Shown here in pieces: positions 14,827 to 42,270 of a stretch of DNA of 64,000 bases (positions are counted from its first letter, which is position 1; the number at the start of each line of letters is the position of its first letter). The stretch spans positions 372,001 through 436,000 of the forward strand of contig CDRNVI010000149.1 in the NCBI GenBank assembly GCA_977017575.1, read 5' to 3'. Both the position numbers and the translations under genes were made by a program. This DNA comes from Paramoeba atlantica (Eukaryota; Protista; Discosea). The notes below the pieces were generated by a model. It had not been told where the DNA came from, searched no databases, and saw only the letters and a list, made by a program, of their open reading frames with translations.

Positions 14827-15719
14827 CTTTTTTTTTTCTTTTTGTTTTGTTTTTTTCCCTTCTGGTGGGTTGGTTTTTTTTCACTCACCAAAACCAAAAA
14901 TTCTTCTTTTTATTTTTTTCTTTTCTTCTTTTTCCTTATGAAATATTCAAAAAGCATAAATTTCAAGAGCTCACCATTTGCACAGATAGTCAAAAATTGA
15001 GATCCCCAAAATTCTCTTAAATCCCCAAAAATTTTATTGGTATGATGGAGGAGGCTTCAGTGAGATTTGAGATGATTGAACAAGCCAACAACTTGGTTGT
15101 AAAGAGTGGAAAAGGGGTCAATATCAAAGGAGAAATATTTATTTTGAAGTATTTACATACAAATGTAAAGATTCTTCTGTTCTTCTTCGTACCATTGTTT
15201 TCCTCCCTCAATAATATGAACCTCACCCACCATCCTGTTTACGATTCTCTTTCTTTTACTTTCTTTTCTTTTTCTGCTTTTTTGGCTTCTCTCTCTTGGA
15301 TTTTCTCGTCTTTCTTCAAGGCTTCATGGTCATCATAATCAAGCAAAGCAAAAGGTGAATGGAGAGAATGGAGACTGACCCGACCAACTCTTTCTCTTTT
15401 GGAGAGAGTTCAACTTTTCATTTTGTTCCCTCTCTTTCTGGTGATGCTCAAGGATCGATATCATCGCTTTAGAGGCTTTCTTCTTCTGCCAGATACCCAG
15501 AGGGATTTGATTCTTTTTCGAGAGTTTGGCATTAAATGGGAAGAGAAAAGGAATGGTTTAAAACAAAATTTATTTCTGCATTAGAATTCTCCAAACTGCA
15601 ACCGCAGAACTCCATGAGGAGAGCCAACGAGTTGCACAACAACACAACAAAGAACAACAAAAAGATGGGAGAAAACGAAAAAGAAAATCACCTGAGGAGA
15701 TTGAAGCTTAGACCCACAA

Positions 15720-23816: not shown

Positions 23817-24062
23817 ATTTTTTTTTTTGAAAAAAAAATTGAAAAAAAAATCAATCTCATCTCATTGACTTCCTCCTTTTCCCTTGTTGTGGTTGGTTGG
23901 GAATTTGAATGGGGTTTTCTTTTGTCTTTGTTGGTCTTGAGATTCTGTGAGTGCTCAAGAAGGAATTAAAACCTTTTTTTTCTCTCTCTGAGTGTCCTTT
24001 TCTTCTTTTTCCTTCTTCCATCAAAATCACACTAAAATTTGATATCTTTTCAATATACATTC

Positions 24063-24136
24063 TCCTCCTTAGCTCAGTTGGCAGAGCGTGTGGCTGTTAA
24101 CCCACAAGGTCGGAGGTTTGAACGCTCCAGGTGGAG
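24063..24136 (+). pseudogene. tRNA-Asn(GUU) pseudogene
   Basis: Relative to 42315: extra C in the anticodon stem, TTTGA T-loop, T-stem mismatch. Confidence 0.8.
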
Positions 24137-24968
24137 TTTTTTTTTTTTTACCCAACCCCCTCACTCCACAACTTTTTGCAGCTCCATTTTTCAATAAGAT
24201 TGTGGATGCTTTTCAACATTCAGCTATTTTCCAGCTCAGAATGGTGCAGTCAAAAGATATGTTCAAGAAGCTAAAAGGTCTTTACTCTGTTAAATTGTTG
24301 GAGGGTGAAACAAAACAAGTTGGGTGAAATTTTTGCCAGTTGTTCAAAAAAATGTCTTTTAGTGCCAGAAACATAAGTCAACACCACCTCATTTGCTTGG
24401 ATGTCTGGAAGAGAGAGAGAGAGAGAAACCAGGCAGCAAATTATGAAGGGTTGAAGTTGGAAATTGCCCCACACTCCTGAACAACTGTTGGAAAGGAATC
24501 GAAAGATGGTTTTTGAAGTTTATCCAACCCTTGTGAAAATTGTCCAAAGAAATGAGTAAAAAAAGGCTGTGATTAATGTGAATGAAAGAAACCAAAAGCA
24601 ACAAAATCTTTGAATGCCAAAATTCTTTCGAATGGTCTGTTGGTGATGAAACTGAAGACCACCCTCACTCTCAACCTCCTTACCTTTACAAACACCAGTG
24701 GCTTGAACATTCAACTATTGCACCTTCAGTATTGGAGAATAATCCCCAAAAAGAGAAAAAAAAAATGACAGTATGACTTACTTTCAAAATTGTTTTTGAA
24801 AAGTTTCGAATTTTTCTTGGAAAAGGAAGTTTCTGAAGAGTTTGGTGATCCCACACAAAACAGATACACCATTTTGATAGAGAAAAACAAAAGAACAAAC
24901 AATGACTTCAAAAAAATAAGACCAATTCTGCCCCACCCCCTGCTGCATGGATTTGAAGAAAAAAAAAG

Positions 24969-31634: not shown

Positions 31635-31647
31635 GCCGAAATAGCTC
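31635..31647 (+). pseudogene. 5' part (nt 1-13, GCCGAAATAGCTC) of a split tRNA-Phe
   Basis: GCCGAAA pairs with the acceptor 3' strand TTTTGGC of the fragment at 37482-37539. Confidence 0.8.
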
Positions 31648-31730
31648 CAAAATACAATTTATTGAAAGATAAATTGCAAACAAAAGTTTGCATTCTCAAA
31701 ATACTACGTTAGGTTCTGTGATTTCCTAGG

Positions 31731-32200
31731 TCACAACAAGGTCCACTTTATCACTCTTGCATTTTCTGGGGAAGGATTAAATCGTCGTTTCCAAAGCCAT
31801 TGGGATCCTTCGATTACTGTCTCAAACATAAGCCGGAGGCAGTGTTGTACTCTTGTTGGGGGGACTCCTGCATTGATGAGGTTACCTCGCAAGTTTGAAG
31901 TCATTCCACCAAGCGATCCGATCACAATGGGGATCATTGTGACTTTGTAGGTGCGGTTTCGACTTTTCAGTGCTTCGACCAAGGGGAAGTATTTGTTTGT
32001 TTTGTTGATCTCACTCAATTCAGTGTTAGTATCATAGGGAGTCGAGATTTCGATAATTTCGATAGTTTGGCGAGCATGGTTGAGAATGAAGATGTCTGGT
32101 TTGTTTTTTGTGACAATTCCTTCATAGTGATGTGGAGGGATCGGTTTATCAATTAGAAGGAGATCATCAGGATGCAGACATTTAAAAGAGAGGAAGACAT
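31731..32200 (-). pseudogene. Restriction-like endonuclease domain, frameshifted from the RT ORF
   Basis: KNKPDIFILNHARQTIEIIEISTPYD...KTNKY...IPIVIGSLGG, a PD-(D/E)xK-type motif set. Confidence 0.85.
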
Positions 32201-33754
32201 TCTGAACTCGATATTGTGTCGATGGATCATATCTTGGATTCTTAGTTTACAACCATTTAGGACATGGAGTTGGGTTTCTGACTGCCCGCAGAGAGGACAC
32301 TTCCCATCACCCTTCTGTTGTGTAAAAACATAGTAGGATTTTGTTGGAAGTTGTTGCAGGTAGGCTTTCAACCAGAATCGGAGGTAGTGATTGTTGGGGT
32401 TCCATCGCTTTCGAGTGGTACTGTTAGAGTGTCCACCAACTTTCCAGCTTCTCAGGATTTGCCCTTGAACTTTTAATTCCTCAACGTGTTTGAGGATTTT
32501 ATTGTCCATCATCTTCTGAATCTTATCAACATCGAGATGCTCGAGTGCTTGGGTGTTCTCTGGGAAGAATTTACGAGCAATTTCGTGGGCAACTGTCCAA
32601 AAGCATCGCGCTCGGTCGAATGGGATGTCAGGTTTACCAATAAAGTTCTGCTGCTGGCCTCTTGCTTGTGCAGAGTCAAGTAGAGAGTCTTCAATGATGC
32701 TGACTGCTTTTTGGTCATATTCTTTGGACATCAGGTAGTTGAATCGTCTTGCTTGAAGGGAATAATACATCTTCCTGATGTTTGGGAGAGCCAAGCCACC
32801 ATTGCTGAAGGCAATGGTGAGCATTTCGATGTTGGTGTTGTGGGGGAGTCTGAACCAGGACCTGACTGAGTCATTGATGAGGAGCTGTATTTGGTCAACA
32901 TGGCCAAGGTTCGTCTTTTCATTGAGCAAGACATAGGTACATGAGCTTGCAACCCACTGGGAGAGGGCGACTATCTTGTAACGAAGAGGGAGATTCGCCG
33001 CAGTTAGAAGATCTAGTCGATTTTTGACCTTCTCGATGAGTTTTTCGATTGTTGTGCTCGATTTTGGTTTGTCATTGAAGAAGCTTCCAAGGTAGTGAGT
33101 GTCCTCTGTTTCACCTCTCTTGATGACTTCAACAGGTGATCCATCGATCTTCACAGTCCAGTCATCATGTTGTTGGATGTCTCCTTTGAAGGAGTGTTTG
33201 ATGAGGGCGCATTTGGAGGGGACAAGCTTCAGGCAAAGCCACTTCAAGAATTGTTCGAGCAGTTTGAGGGTGTCAAGGAGCATGTTTCGAGAGCCTGTAT
33301 TAAAGCACATATCATCACAGAAACCCAGTGATGGTATGACACTTTTCTGAGTAATCATCTGATATCCAATTTTACTTTTGTTGAGGAGTCGCCAGACAGG
33401 TTCAAGACAGAGGTTGAATATAATTCCACTCAGGGGATCTCCTTGTTTCACACCTCGAGATTGTGGGACATTGTTTTTTGTTTTTTCATGCGAGAAGATC
33501 ATGACGCCAGCTTTCATAATTCCCCAGATCAGGACACAAATCTTCTTTGGGAGGCCCAGGCCAAATAGGATGGTGATCATTTGCTTGTATTCAACAGCAC
33601 CAAAGGCGTTTTGGACATCAACAAACAGGCTTAGGAACTCGTTGGAGGACCGGTGTCGCGAGATGTTGTCTTTGGCCGCTTGAATCATTGAAAGATTGAG
33701 CATTGTCCCGTTCAGATTTGTGTATCCTCGTTGCTCATCGCTCCATATCTTGTT
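32153..33754 (-). CDS. Reverse transcriptase (from domain 2) with CCHC zinc knuckle
   Basis: EQRGY, FVDVQNAFG, GVKQGDPLS, FCDD, YLG, GGLAL, CPLCGQSETQLHVLNGC, RHN. The ORF-track N-terminus (33755-33877) is transposon TIR sequence. Confidence 0.92.
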   Translation of the reverse strand, partial: NKIWSDEQRGYTNLNGTMLNLSMIQAAKDNISRHRSSNEFLSLFVDVQNAFGAVEYKQMITILFGLGLPKKICVLIWGIMKAGVMIFSHEKTKNNVPQSRGVKQGDPLSGIIFNLCLEPVWRLLNKSKIGYQMITQKSVIPSLGFCDDMCFNTGSRNMLLDTLKLLEQFLKWLCLKLVPSKCALIKHSFKGDIQQHDDWTVKIDGSPVEVIKRGETEDTHYLGSFFNDKPKSSTTIEKLIEKVKNRLDLLTAANLPLRYKIVALSQWVASSCTYVLLNEKTNLGHVDQIQLLINDSVRSWFRLPHNTNIEMLTIAFSNGGLALPNIRKMYYSLQARRFNYLMSKEYDQKAVSIIEDSLLDSAQARGQQQNFIGKPDIPFDRARCFWTVAHEIARKFFPENTQALEHLDVDKIQKMMDNKILKHVEELKVQGQILRSWKVGGHSNSTTRKRWNPNNHYLRFWLKAYLQQLPTKSYYVFTQQKGDGKCPLCGQSETQLHVLNGCKLRIQDMIHRHNIEFRMSSSLLNVCILMISF

Positions 33755-34223
33755 GGGTACAGGCAGCAAAGTTGACAGTTGCGGTTGAGAAAAAGAAGTA
33801 TTTGATGATGTCATCTTTATCCATAATAAGAGTTGCTGAAAAGTTGCTGGCACAATTTGATTTATTCCTACTTCCACAAGAAAAATGAATGAAATAGACC
33901 AGACCTTATGATATGAGCAGGCGAAAAGTTGTTTTCAAAAGGACTCTTTCAAAGCCACAAAAAACACTTTGAAGCACAATTTAATTTAGGGTCCTGAAAA
34001 TAAAATTTATTCTTTTCAAAGGGGACAATTTTTTTTTCTTTTTTGGTGAAAAAAAATAGAAAACTAAATCCCGTGAATTTTTCTTGGAAAAGTTTTCTTT
34101 CTGTTTTCTTCTTTCTCTCTTTTCTCTCTTTCTTGTCTTTTCTCTCTTTTCTTTGTCTCTTTCTTTTTTCTGTTTGAAATTTTCATTCTTTTTGGAAAGT
34201 TGTAGAAACACAGAAGTTTCACG

Positions 34224-35192
34224 ATGAGTAACAAAGAGGATGAAGTTTCAAACCGAAAAAGAGGATCATTGAAAACACCAAGAGATCGAGTGGTCTTTAC
34301 CAAGTCAGAGGAAGATTTGCAACGGGAAACTGCTGATCGTTGTTATATCCACAACAAGAATGTGTATGTTGAGGTTCAGACTCGAGATGGAAAAGTGAAT
34401 CGAGCTCACTTTGTAAAACAGTTTTTTTCTGTGAAAGAAATGGAGATGCTCCACGAAACTCTTCATTCTTGCGATTATTGGAAAAGAAAAGAGGACAAAC
34501 GTGGAGATCGTCCTGAAACTATCATGGGAGTGTGGCCTGCTCGAGGCCATTGTAACCCTGGGGATCCAACTTATCCAGCAGGATTTGGAGGGAAATATGA
34601 AGATAAGCTACAATATCCAATATTGACTCCAGTTTTGGAGAGACTTGGAGAAAAGGCAACTTTGTTGGTGAAAGAGAAACGACCGGATATCTACAACCTT
34701 TTGAAGGGCGAGAACCAATTATGTTCAAATTTTGGCTTGTTTCATTTATTTCTCTCCCCTCTTGGATTCAGTTTGTTTCACAAGGACTCATTTGATTATG
34801 TTGCATTTATTTTTGGAGTCCATGTGAACCCAAATTCGACTGGAGGAGCTCTTGAAATTGGAGGATCTAAGAGAGCATTCAATATTAGAGTTGGAGATGT
34901 TTTGATGTTGGACTCTGATGCACTTTGGCATGGGAGTCGAGACTATCAGGGTGATGAAGACCCTTTCTTTCCTCATGAAGATGATCGTATGGTTGGAATC
35001 TTTGTTCTTCACCGAACCTTTTTAAAGTTGCGTGGTGTGGAGTGGGATACAATGTTGCGTGAAGATTTTGGAAGTCGAACCATCCCGAATGTGAAGGAAC
35101 CACCAAAAAAAAAAAAAAGAGAATGTCACCTGCAGAAAAGAAGCAAAGAAAGAAGGAAAATAAAAAATAAAAAACTTTTATTTAAAAAATAA
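34224..35192 (+). CDS. TET/JBP-like 2-oxoglutarate-Fe(II) dioxygenase
   Basis: FHKDSFD (HxD), GGALEI, GDVLMLDSDALWHGS (distal His), DRMVGIFV (2OG-binding Arg); spacing like protist TET/JBP enzymes; basic C-terminus. Confidence 0.8.
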   Translation: MSNKEDEVSNRKRGSLKTPRDRVVFTKSEEDLQRETADRCYIHNKNVYVEVQTRDGKVNRAHFVKQFFSVKEMEMLHETLHSCDYWKRKEDKRGDRPETIMGVWPARGHCNPGDPTYPAGFGGKYEDKLQYPILTPVLERLGEKATLLVKEKRPDIYNLLKGENQLCSNFGLFHLFLSPLGFSLFHKDSFDYVAFIFGVHVNPNSTGGALEIGGSKRAFNIRVGDVLMLDSDALWHGSRDYQGDEDPFFPHEDDRMVGIFVLHRTFLKLRGVEWDTMLREDFGSRTIPNVKEPPKKKKRECHLQKRSKERRKIKNKKLLFKK

Positions 35193-35699
35193 ATCTTTGT
35201 TCTTCTTCAAACTTCTTTTGTATAATTGATTCAAAATAAATGGAGAACTTGGAAGAAAAAAAAAGAATAAAAAGAGAATAATGACTTGTGCAGAAAAGAA
35301 GGAAAGATAAAAAAAAATTCTCAAAAATAAAAACTTTTCTTTCATTTCATTCATTAGAATTCATGTGAAGCGAACCACTGAATCTTTCTTGACTCACTCC
35401 AAGTTTCACTTCCCTCAACAGGAATTGTCATTGGGGAACGTTTTCTCTTTCGAGGAGGAGAATCATCAGGAGAATCAGGAGCATCAGATGAACCAAGGGA
35501 ACCAGATGAAGATGAAGATGAAGAAGAGGAAGATGATGAAGAGGAAGGCGGAGGTACAACTGCTTCGATCGAACAATCAAAGTCATTATGGGGAGGATTG
35601 AGAAATTCTCTTGTTTCCAAAACATCTTTTTTTTTGCTTGAATCCTCCTTTTCCTTTTATTTATTGTACTAGTCTAGAATAATAACATTATTATTTTAT

Positions 35700-36834
35700 T
35701 TTAAAAAAAAATCATTCAAAAATGAAAAATAAAGAAAAAACCTTTCTTCCGAGAGAAATTGAGAGATTTTTTTCCAACAAGTGTTTTGTTGTATCTTTCC
35801 TGTCCACTTCTTCTGAAAAAAGAAGTTGTTCCTCGAAAACAATCTCATTTGTATGTTCTTCTTCTTTGGGTGGGGGCACCAGAACAGTTTCTAAAATTGA
35901 AAAATATCGACTAAGGATGTCAACAACTGTTGCAGCATTGGAGTATGTTTGACCCCGAAAAAGAGTTTCTTTCAGGTATCAATTGAACCTCTCAATCAAA
36001 TTATTCGTTTTTCCTCCAATCCATTGTGACAAACGAGGAATTATCCATTTCTCCATATACTCAAGCCTAAAAACAAAAAATAAAATATAAATTTTACTTT
36101 ACACACTTGTTTCATTTTTCAAAGGAAAAAAAAAAGAATAAAATAAATCAAAATCCAAACCAAAGCTTTCCTTTTGGACAAGTAACAGCAATTTGAACCC
36201 ATACATTTTCTGCTTGTTCTCATCTTTTTGTTCTTTCATTTCCTTCAATACCCCAAGATAAAAAGAATAAGTTTCTTTCGGAACCCCAAGGGCTTTTAAC
36301 TTGTCCTTAGCATTCATGATCATATGGAAGTAACATAACTTCCATTCAGACTCCTCCCACATTACTTTTCCTATTAAAACAAAACAAATCAATAAAAGTA
36401 AAAAAAGAAAATAATTGTCATTCAAATAATCAACCTGCATTTCCAATACCAAACTCCATATCAGTTAAAATAGAACAATCATTCAATTCCAACCCAATAT
36501 ATTTGAGGTCAGCAAACCACCGGAGATAGGTGAATTCAGTTTTTCGATTTGTTAATAAACAAGATAGAGGACAAAAATTTGTTCCATGTATTTTATCTTT
36601 TGTATCCTCTAACATGAAAAAGAATTATCAAAAAAATGAAAATGAATTAAACTTTTCTTTTCAAATGGAAGATAACAAACCTCTCAGGGGAACACCAAGA
36701 ATCATCAGTTGTAGAGAGGGGGATAATTTAAAAACACCATCAATGAAAAATTCTTTCATATCTGGTTTTACATAATTGGCAATTAGGATCTTCGAACCAA
36801 GTTCAATGAAGACAGAAAGCTGATTGTCTTCCCC
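35700..36834 (-). pseudogene. Intron-containing MULE transposase, decayed
   Basis: Exons 36834-36681 (FFIDGVFK..QLMI), 36608-36435 (PLSCLLTNRKT..Y...ILTDME), 36370-36161 (LCYFH) with GT-AG introns. A later exon reads TNNLIERFN*YLK, with an in-frame TGA. Confidence 0.82.
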
Positions 36835-37105
36835 CTGAGATTAGAAGCGGCGGGGAAAAAAGAAGAAGAGAGAGCAACGGAAAAAATAAAAAAAAGAATT
36901 TTGGAATGAATTAAAAATCAATTTTCTTTTTTTTGACGACTTCAAAACAACTCTTATTATCTAGCCATCAAAGTCTCAAAAAAAGTTTTTTCTTCCTGAC
37001 AAAAAGAATTGCGTTGTTTTTGTGTTGTTTTAAAAGGATAAGGGTTGATGAAAAGTTGAAGCAACTTTCGAACAACAGCAACTATCAACTTTGCTGCCTG
37101 TACCC

Positions 37106-37382
37106 GTTCAAAACGATGGACACCAGCGTTGGGTTTTAGCGCTTCAGGGAGAACCTTGACTTTTTCACTCTGACTCAGGTTAAACCGGGTGTTTAGTTTT
37201 TCCAGTTTCTTTTTGTACCTAGCATGATAACATTTCACTGAATTAATCGATCGATCTTTAAAATAAAGTTTTTGAAGGAGAGAGGGTGTGATGGATGGTT
37301 TTTCCAAAACAATCTTCTCATAGAGCTGCGTCTCGTCCTGGGTCCACCTTTTCCGAGATCTGCCATTACCGCTGGTTGTCAT
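37106..37382 (-). CDS. Myb/SANT-like N-terminal domain of the R2-like element
   Basis: RKRWTQDETQLYEKIVLEKP...FKDRSINSVKCYHARY. Confidence 0.7.
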
Positions 37383-37481
37383 ATGGGAAAGTCCGCGAGT
37401 TGCCTCGTTGTCTCCGCTCCTGAGGGGTGATAGGTGACAATCAATGATGATGTTGGAAAACGGAAAGGAACGTGAAACCCA

Positions 37482-37514
<33 letters not shown>

Positions 37515-37539
37515 ACGTGTTCGATCCACGTTTTTGGCA
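37482..37539 (+). pseudogene. 3' part of the split tRNA-Phe(GAA)
   Basis: TTGGGAGAGCG-TCAGA-CTGAAGA-TCTGA-AGGTC-ACGTG-TTCGATC-CACGT-TTTTGGCA followed by a T-run. Confidence 0.9.
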
Positions 37540-41599: not shown

Positions 41600-42270
41600 T
41601 GACTCCCATGATACAAATATCGAATTGAGTGAAATTCAAAAAACAAATACTTCCCCTTGGTCGATGCACAAAAAAGTCGAAACCGCTCTTACAAAGTCAC
41701 AATGATCCCAATTGTCTGATCAGATCACTTGGTAGAATGTGACTTCAAACTTGCAAGGTATGTCAGATCGACTGGATCTCAGGAGAGATGGACAAAACAA
41801 AAGCAAAGCCAAACCAAAGATCAAATCGAAAATGTAGATTTATTCAAGGAAACAAACAAGGTGAACATTTGCTCAAGAGAGAGAAATGTGAGGGCAGTGA
41901 AAAGACAGTTGAGATGTGATCGTGACAAGAATAAAAAGGAACACAAAAACAGCGTTTTTGTGGAAGGAAACAAGGACAAAATCAAATCAGGAAGGGATAA
42001 AATAAACATCAGGAAAAATAGGAAAAGGGAAAATAATACAAGGGGAAAAATACAACAGAGAAAGGGAAAAGAGAGAGAGAAAGAGCAGTGATCAATCGGA
42101 GGAGCGGAGCGACAGGATGGCATCAAATTGAATAGAAGACAACCGAACAGGGTTCGTAACAAGGTAACCTCATCAATGCAAGAGCTCCCCCCAACAAGAG
42201 TACAACACTGCCTCCAGCTTATGTTTGAGACAGTAATTGAAGGATCCCAATGGCTTTGAAAAATGTGATC
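41600..42270 (+). pseudogene. Decayed second copy of the RLE C-terminus of the R2-like element
   Basis: Matches the reverse complement of ~31790-32040, split by a solo LTR. Confidence 0.85.
41761..42161. mobile_element. Solo LTR, 401 bp
   Basis: TGTCAG...GTAACA termini with AGGTA duplicated at 41756-41760 and 42162-42166. Removing it restores the host sequence. Confidence 0.85.

Follow-up and report, generated by a model that had tools for sequence, protein, structure and literature searches.

The 64,000-nucleotide stretch of Paramoeba atlantica DNA analysed here (the window; GenBank assembly GCA_977017575.1, contig CDRNVI010000149.1, positions 372,001 to 436,000 of the forward strand) contains a phenylalanine tRNA (tRNA-Phe) gene that is split into two parts lying 5.8 kb apart. 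Between them, antisense to the tRNA, is a minus-strand retrotransposon without long terminal repeats (a non-LTR retrotransposon) of the restriction-like endonuclease (RLE) type, which occupies positions 31648-37482. The element very probably belongs to a family of sequence-specific retrotransposons that use the D-arm/A-box DNA of tRNA genes as their target, and the window copy itself is dead.

Of the 16 tRNA genes called in the window by ARAGORN, none extends across positions 31635-37539. Foreign DNA starts directly after nucleotide (nt) 13 of the tRNA-Phe gene, and the remaining part of the gene ends at 37539. The two halves joined in silico, with or without two filler bases, are recognised as tRNA-Phe(GAA). 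An intact paralogue on contig C177 has the sequence TAGCTCAGCTGGGAGAGC, and its upstream and downstream flanks are the same as those in the window. The split reported in the preliminary description of this DNA is thus real and not a chance resemblance. The second tRNA piece, previously given as nt ~16-76 at 37482-37539, is indeed part of tRNA-Phe, but its limits have to be corrected to nt 17-73 at 37483-37539, and the earlier estimate of 1-2 nt lost at the 5' junction was too low. Nt 16 is C in the intact paralogues, and the seven tRNA-Phe loci without an interruption agree with the window from 37483 onward only; therefore, the T at 37482 does not belong to the tRNA, and the gene has lost three nt (AGC, nt 14-16). 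The antisense orientation and the lack of both a target duplication and a poly(A) tail at the junctions agree with what was described before.

DNA and protein searches identified four copies of the element in the assembly, in the window and on contigs C137, C143, and C170. The copy on C137 is complete, with a length of 3739 bp (L034:829-4567). It is located inside a tRNA-Phe gene and has a 99-nt 5' untranslated region (UTR), a frame of 1178 codons that is open from the first ATG, and a 103-nt 3' UTR. The C143 copy is frameshifted and belongs to a segmental duplicate of the window region that is at least 15 kb long and has a 99.6% identical flank. The C170 copy is 5'-truncated to 635 bp. It interrupts a tRNA-Asn gene, where it is flanked by ...TAGCTC and GGCAGAGCG..., and its 5' join shows a GTT microhomology. 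All four copies are antisense to the tRNA and adjoin GCTC at tRNA nt 13, so that their 3' ends abut GAGCTA, the complement of tRNA nt 8-13, three times in tRNA-Phe and once in tRNA-Asn.

The window and C137 elements are 99.2% identical, whereas outside the element the identity is 95% and further out 87% in one flank, compared with 90.8% in the opposite flank, and the base before GAGCTA is G in the window and C in C137. Because the elements are more similar than their flanks and differ in the junction base, the two are separate insertions into paralogous genes. The four genome copies derive from at least three separate insertions. A search for the 3' junction had been suggested as a means of refuting the specificity for tRNA genes. 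The last 15 bases of the element have eight exact matches in the genome, four of which are the element copies, and none of these is outside a tRNA gene. The other four matches (C141, C144:412988, C169, and C184) are in unrelated AT-rich DNA with no further similarity to the element and were rejected. A count of the target motif TAGCTCAGYTGG across the assembly gives 45 occurrences, compared to eight of a reversed control. The family and its type of tRNA-Phe were found on contigs C137-C244 only, along with dense tRNA clusters. Contigs C1-C136 carry other reverse transcriptase (RT) families with frames of 1500-1600 codons, and an 89%-identical tRNA-Phe with AGTTGG. Given these differing sets of contigs, the assembly may hold two genomes. 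The taxonomy of the relatives in other datasets would place the element in an amoebozoan host.

Relatives at 40-47% identity exist outside this genome. Those found by a word-based protein search (42-47%) stem from two assemblies in ENA, a soil metagenome of JGI, and the EukProt transcriptomes of two tubulinean amoebae, Flabellula baltica and Copromyxa protea. A metagenome scan with the family profile gave no new members, just distant RLE elements at 21-34% identity. Transcripts with complete open reading frames (ORFs) are present in Flabellula and Copromyxa, and together with the 1178-codon ORF of C137 they point to an active family.

The genomic relatives are all antisense to a tRNA, and each of their 3' UTRs stops 7-10 nt past AATAAA without poly(A). 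The copy L067 is inserted in an intron-bearing tRNA-Tyr gene with the 5' junction CCCA^ATGGGT and the 3' junction ^GAGCTATAGTCGGA (the caret marks the point of insertion). The same full-length 5' junction recurs in the window and in L152, which is in tRNA-Phe. In L151, also in tRNA-Phe, the 5' end is 8 nt shorter and there is a 6-bp duplication. Two copies are 5'-truncated, L068 in an Arg(ACG)-like tRNA with TGGCTC and L066 in another, unassigned tRNA, and in L069 the contig ends in ...TTT^GAG. The copy L150 is in tRNA-Tyr and is preceded by an intact intron-bearing tRNA-Tyr with ~250 bp of its upstream flank, which is found again after the 3' junction (L150:2700-3000 and 7263-7520); this arrangement may represent either a very long target duplication or a product of recombination. 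L066 and L150 are 100% identical over 3.2 kb and yet are located in different tRNAs, and L067 (Tyr) and L151 (Phe) are 99.5% identical. In both pairs, one subfamily has used two different tRNA species.

Taken across the family, all 3' junctions are positioned after tRNA nt 13, in at least five tRNA species and at least three organisms. The bases recognised are T[A/G]GCTC^AG[C/T]TGG, which are common to many tRNA species, and therefore one subfamily can use several tRNA gene families. The specificity for the tRNA D-arm/A-box proposed earlier is borne out by these separate insertions at the same base in Phe, Asn, Tyr, and Arg-like tRNAs. The motif then given, TAGCTC^AGTTGG, correctly identified the shared D-arm target, but the interrupted tRNA-Phe genes have TAGCTC^AGCTGG, and AGTTGG is the form of tRNA-Asn. 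Full-length copies start with ATGGGT, lack target nt 14-16, and end ~10 nt past AATAAA without poly(A). It is unlikely that the tRNA-like flanks were carried by the RNA of the element, as both flanks always complete the same tRNA, and that tRNA differs between copies.

The protein encoded by the family consists of an N-terminal three-helix Myb-like domain, followed by RT, CCHC, and RLE domains. RVT_1 (E=5e-22) is the sole Pfam domain besides one weak Myb match. The best matches among solved structures are R2 proteins (9nl3, 9nl2, R2Tg, and R2Bm; E 1e-23 to 1e-28), and the alignment to 9nl3 and R2Tg extends from the RT fingers across CCHC and RHN to KPD...E...K of the nuclease. The C-x2-C-x7-H-x4-C motif, KPD, E1100, and K1116 are invariant in eight family members. 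The RT, CCHC, and RLE domains named in the preliminary description are confirmed by these comparisons. The family proteins have no Pfam match to the apurinic/apyrimidinic endonuclease (APE; PF03372) and no Ulp1 domain. Upstream of the RT there is no Cys/His motif in the family alignment and no match to a zinc finger in Pfam.

The N-terminal region, which contains the pattern W-x3-E...R-[ST]-x3-[AV]...R, is confidently predicted to form a three-helix bundle (residues 11-60; AlphaFold pLDDT ~88-90). The Pfam family Myb_DNA-binding matches one of eight members with E=0.015. The Atlas neighbours of the domain are all Myb families, with scores of 0.81-0.87, below 0.9. In structure comparisons the Z-scores are 5-7 for homeodomains, POU, Myb, and SANT domains alike, with 5.9 to Myb2 of T. 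vaginalis and up to 7.1 to homeodomains, and a Foldseek search gave no match at E<=0.001. The domain is a homeodomain-like three-helix DNA-binding domain, probably of Myb-like type. The Myb domain described earlier is therefore plausible, but it is weakly supported, as the predicted fold is equally homeodomain-like.

A mechanism of insertion can be proposed in which the nick positions, the order of cleavage, and the domain that reads the DNA are taken by analogy with R2. The protein, with its Myb-like domain, RT, CCHC motif, and PD-(D/E)XK nuclease, would bind the DNA of the tRNA gene and nick the tRNA-sense strand between C13 and A14. The priming nick is placed there because the complementary DNA (cDNA) strand is the tRNA-sense strand and continues directly from C13. 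The 3'-OH at the nick would prime reverse transcription from the exact 3' end of the RNA, ~10 nt past AATAAA and without poly(A), and priming from the sense strand would leave the element antisense to the tRNA. The second strand would be broken 3 bp further on, with loss of the intervening bases, since three independent full-length insertions from two subfamilies keep the target from nt 17 and start with ATGGGT; 5'-truncated copies would join irregularly. The comparable offset in R2Bm is 2 bp. The variable single base at the 3' junction may be untemplated. More speculatively, a transcript that reads through would contain the complement of tRNA nt 1-13, and this sequence could pair with the primer strand in the way suggested for R2.

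In its antisense orientation, the element can neither be driven by the promoter of the tRNA gene nor be co-transcribed with the tRNA. The 5' UTR is 12-99 nt long across the family. A search of three full-length members found no ribozyme family at E<=1, the matches being tRNAs and chance microRNA hits in a low-complexity stretch. The consensus fold of five 3' UTRs contains no shared pairs; the alignment is poor except for the end with AATAAA and a T-rich sequence.

The window copy was initially described as a single Myb-RT-CCHC-RLE element of 5.8 kb. The retrotransposon is present, but it is divided into two segments by an unrelated DNA transposon with terminal inverted repeats (Table 1). The window retrotransposon is frameshifted after RHN and near the stop codon, and the copy is therefore dead. 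The DNA transposon stands in place of exactly 1257 bp of the retrotransposon that are present in other copies. Such a replacement, rather than a plain interruption, would be consistent with two insertions and subsequent recombination, or with a deletion that accompanied the insertion. The DNA transposon contains a 322-codon ORF on the plus strand (34224-35192) that has no Pfam match. Sequence 99% identical to the first 145 bp of the transposon is also present on C149:570768 and C143:397278.

Table 1. Positions in the window of the interrupted tRNA-Phe gene, the two retrotransposon segments, and the DNA transposon between them
Feature	Position	Strand	Description
tRNA-Phe nt 1-13	31635-31647	+	Left target flank; acceptor 5' strand, T8, A9, D-stem GCTC
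Retrotransposon 3' segment	31648-33755	-	Bases 2463-4567 of the intact C137 copy
RLE	about 31734-32130	-	In 3' segment
RHN	32213-32221	-	In 3' segment
CCHC motif	32249-32299	-	In 3' segment
RT FCDD	33302-33325	-	In 3' segment
RT motif A	33599-33625	-	In 3' segment
3' UTR with AATAAA	within 31648-33755	-	In 3' segment
DNA transposon	33756-37104	.	Unrelated to the retrotransposon, of which it forms no part; terminal inverted repeats of ~30 bp (GGTACAGGCAGCAAAGTTGA...)
Retrotransposon 5' segment	37105-37482	-	C137 bases 828/829-1205; conserved 5' end ATGGGT, 99-nt 5' UTR
Myb-like three-helix domain	37194-37355	-	In 5' segment
First ATG	37382-37380	-	In 5' segment
tRNA-Phe nt 17-73	37483-37539	+	Right target flank; D-loop onward, GAA anticodon, B box, acceptor 3' strand, then T-run terminating RNA polymerase III (Pol III) transcription

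Seven of the 14 near-identical tRNA-Phe 3' parts bear an insertion scar. Three of the scarred loci contain long copies, three retain ~10 nt of the 5' end of the element, and one has a palindromic junction. The loci with short scars, L153 (C170:80410), L155 (C244:16369), and L156 (C144:71010), are duplicated tRNA-Phe 3' parts that keep the element end GAAACCCA and continue into unrelated sequence; they are remnants of an older insertion, the remainder of which was deleted or displaced. At L154 (C143:295280-295500), the tRNA-Phe 3' part is broken at nt 17, where its own inverted copy follows (GACGCTCTCCCA^TTGGGAGAGCGTC). The resulting palindromic junction lies at the target site of the element and may stem from an insertion that failed or was resolved as a hairpin.

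An old fragment of the RLE region is located elsewhere in the window (41602-41760 and 42162-42262; 85% and 95% identical to the C137 copy) and is split by an insert of ~400 bp. It ends ~50 bp upstream of a tRNA-Asn gene that is intact and has the same orientation, and the same fragment is found between tRNA-Asp and tRNA-Asn at no fewer than six loci (L005-L008, L013, and L014) as part of a duplicated cluster unit. The fragment (41602-42262) was dropped as evidence on the target, as it is in sense orientation and has no D-arm junction. In addition, ARAGORN gave two 'tRNA-???' calls with four-base anticodons in the window, at 14742-14827 and 24062-24137. The latter resembles tRNA-Asn, with ~96% identity to the Asn 3' part on C170, and may represent a copy that has decayed or is unusual.

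Several points weigh against a retrotransposon that itself recognises the tRNA D-arm. The last base ahead of GAGCTA can be G, C, or A, or can be absent, which leaves it ambiguous whether the exact 3' end differs or a base is untemplated, and the putative nick sites are deduced from the junctions. The intact tRNA-Tyr and ~250-bp duplicated flank of L150 are not accounted for by a simple 3-bp offset. The Myb assignment is weak, with a Pfam match in one of eight members, Atlas scores below 0.9, and a fold search that does not separate Myb from the homeodomain. Moreover, this genome provides just three or four independent events, as the window and C143 copies represent one event that was segmentally duplicated. 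The location in tRNA genes could instead result from tethering to the Pol III machinery, through TFIIIC on the A and B boxes or through TFIIIB, as in Dictyostelium TRE or yeast Ty3, with a nuclease that has little specificity of its own. All the targets are Pol III genes with the site within the A box, and tethering is known for tRNA-associated elements of amoebae (review PMC5911963). However, tethered elements land at variable distances outside the gene (PMC5911963), whereas here every 3' junction is at the same phosphodiester bond after GCTC in five or more tRNA species and three or more organisms, and the nuclease is an RLE with CCHC, as in sequence-specific R2-type elements, and not an APE; we consider tethering improbable. 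Even less credit can be given to the idea that there is no specificity and that one old tRNA-Phe insertion was spread by segmental duplication of a tRNA cluster. The tRNA clusters of the genome are highly duplicated, and the window and C143 share ~15 kb that is colinear at 96-99.6% identity and includes the interrupted gene. Nevertheless, this explanation is refuted by the C170 copy in tRNA-Asn with unrelated flanks, by the C137 copy, in which the flanks have diverged although the element is 99.2% identical and the junction base is different, and by the relatives in other organisms, which are inserted in other tRNAs at the same base.

While recognition of the D-arm by the element is the best-supported explanation of its location, its place among RLE elements has to be weighed separately. 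The family has a single ORF in which the RT is followed by CCHC and a PD-(D/E)XK RLE, lacks APE, and has one defined insertion sequence. It is an RLE-type element ('R2 group' in the wide sense, which includes R2, R4, NeSL/Utopia, and HERO), but it is not filed as R2 proper, because two of the features that define R2, insertion in 28S and ZnF1, were looked for and not found: all copies are in tRNA genes, and the proteins have no N-terminal zinc finger. The search of three full-length members found no HDV-like ribozyme either, which in R2 frees the RNA from the co-transcript of the host gene. A quick maximum-likelihood tree was calculated with one bona fide R2 (P0016 from Xylocopa, 560 bits to R2Bm), NeSL-like proteins, and an APE outgroup, without named references for R4, HERO, CRE, and Utopia. 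In this tree the family is monophyletic (100), with a long stem and three subclades, and is not sister to the single R2 sampled; it has no supported joining to R2 or the NeSL-like proteins, the deep nodes stay open, and the APE outgroup does not form one clade. The Ulp1-bearing proteins P0010 and P0011, which are among the best non-family matches (168 and 161 bits), do not group with the family, which also lacks the N-terminal zinc fingers of the NeSL/Utopia clade and the Ulp1 protease of nematode NeSL. We therefore retain 'R2-like', the term used in the preliminary description, for the architecture and junction style, whereas membership of the R2 clade is not borne out. That the family is a true member of this clade, the first outside animals, and switched from 28S ribosomal DNA (rDNA) to tRNA genes, is unlikely. 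The N-terminal Myb-like domain, which has been called a hallmark of R2 and is absent from Utopia (PMC13580325), would speak for such an origin, as would the precise 3' end, small target deletion, and lack of poly(A), and the best structural matches being R2 proteins. However, ZnF1 is universal in R2, the family forms a separate long branch, and its 101 bits to the R2 structures are fewer than those of the Ulp1-bearing NeSL-like P0011 (187) and a zinc-finger-bearing relative, P0008 (246); furthermore, Kojima et al. never found R2 outside animals (PMC5035012). More tentatively, and with considerable doubt, the family may be a deep, unnamed RLE clade in tubulinean amoebae, in which a lone Myb-like domain and the nuclease would read the near-universal tRNA A-box/D-arm, opening many tRNA families to insertion.

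The family resembles R2 of animal 28S rDNA (R2Bm and R2Tg) in its single ORF, where a DNA-binding region at the N-terminus is followed by RT, CCHC, and PD-(D/E)XK RLE, and in the use of one exact bond in a multicopy RNA gene, the lack of poly(A), the few target bases deleted in full-length copies, and the variable 5' junctions of truncated ones. It differs in its antisense insertion into tRNA rather than 28S genes, the lack of a detected ribozyme and of an N-terminal zinc finger, its amoeba hosts, and a very divergent RT (101 bits). tRNA genes are already known as targets of RLE elements: NeSL-1_TV is reported to be specific for tRNA-Pro, LIN15_SM for tRNA-Arg, and LIN25_SM for tRNA-Glu (Kojima and Jurka 2015, PMC4640811). 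These NeSL-related non-LTR elements likewise use a fixed site inside tRNA genes, and two of the three strongest non-family matches of the word-based search carry the NeSL-type Ulp1 protease. However, by published description each uses one tRNA gene family, whereas the amoeba family uses a motif of multiple tRNAs, is always antisense, and has a Myb-like N-terminus with neither zinc fingers nor protease. LIN15_SM is inserted in sense orientation at a site further into the tRNA gene (PMC4640811 supplement). Utopia elements, including Utopia-1_ACa of Acanthamoeba, share the RLE, a small multicopy RNA gene as the target, and their presence in Amoebozoa, but they target the U2 small nuclear RNA (snRNA) gene and have N-terminal zinc fingers and no Myb. 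Dictyostelium TRE5/TRE3 and Dada also make use of tRNA genes, which in compact genomes offer safe places to land; TRE elements, however, are of the APE-type L1 clade and land outside the gene by binding TFIIIB, and Dada elements are DNA transposons. Our literature search, which did not reach the inventory of Fell et al., found no described family that combines the shared D-arm motif, antisense insertion, a Myb-like domain without a zinc finger, and occurrence in Amoebozoa.

Target-primed reverse transcription has its model in the site-specific RLE retrotransposons, and current applications employ these elements to write genes into genomic sites that are safe. The family adds to them a ~12-bp target that is common to many tRNA species and conserved across eukaryotes. 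This target is reached with a minimal N-terminus of one three-helix domain and no zinc finger, in antisense orientation, and independently of the promoter of the host gene, which makes the family a compact model in which to study how proteins of this kind read DNA and how they come to be transcribed. The impact on the host is visible in the scars borne by about half of the near-identical tRNA-Phe copies in the C137-C244 contig set. The family also brings Amoebozoa into the range of Myb-bearing R2-style elements, whereas reports of R2 itself are confined to animals (PMC5035012). If the family does constitute a deep amoeba clade, the Myb-first architecture, which has been seen as a hallmark of animal R2, would predate animals or would have arisen twice.

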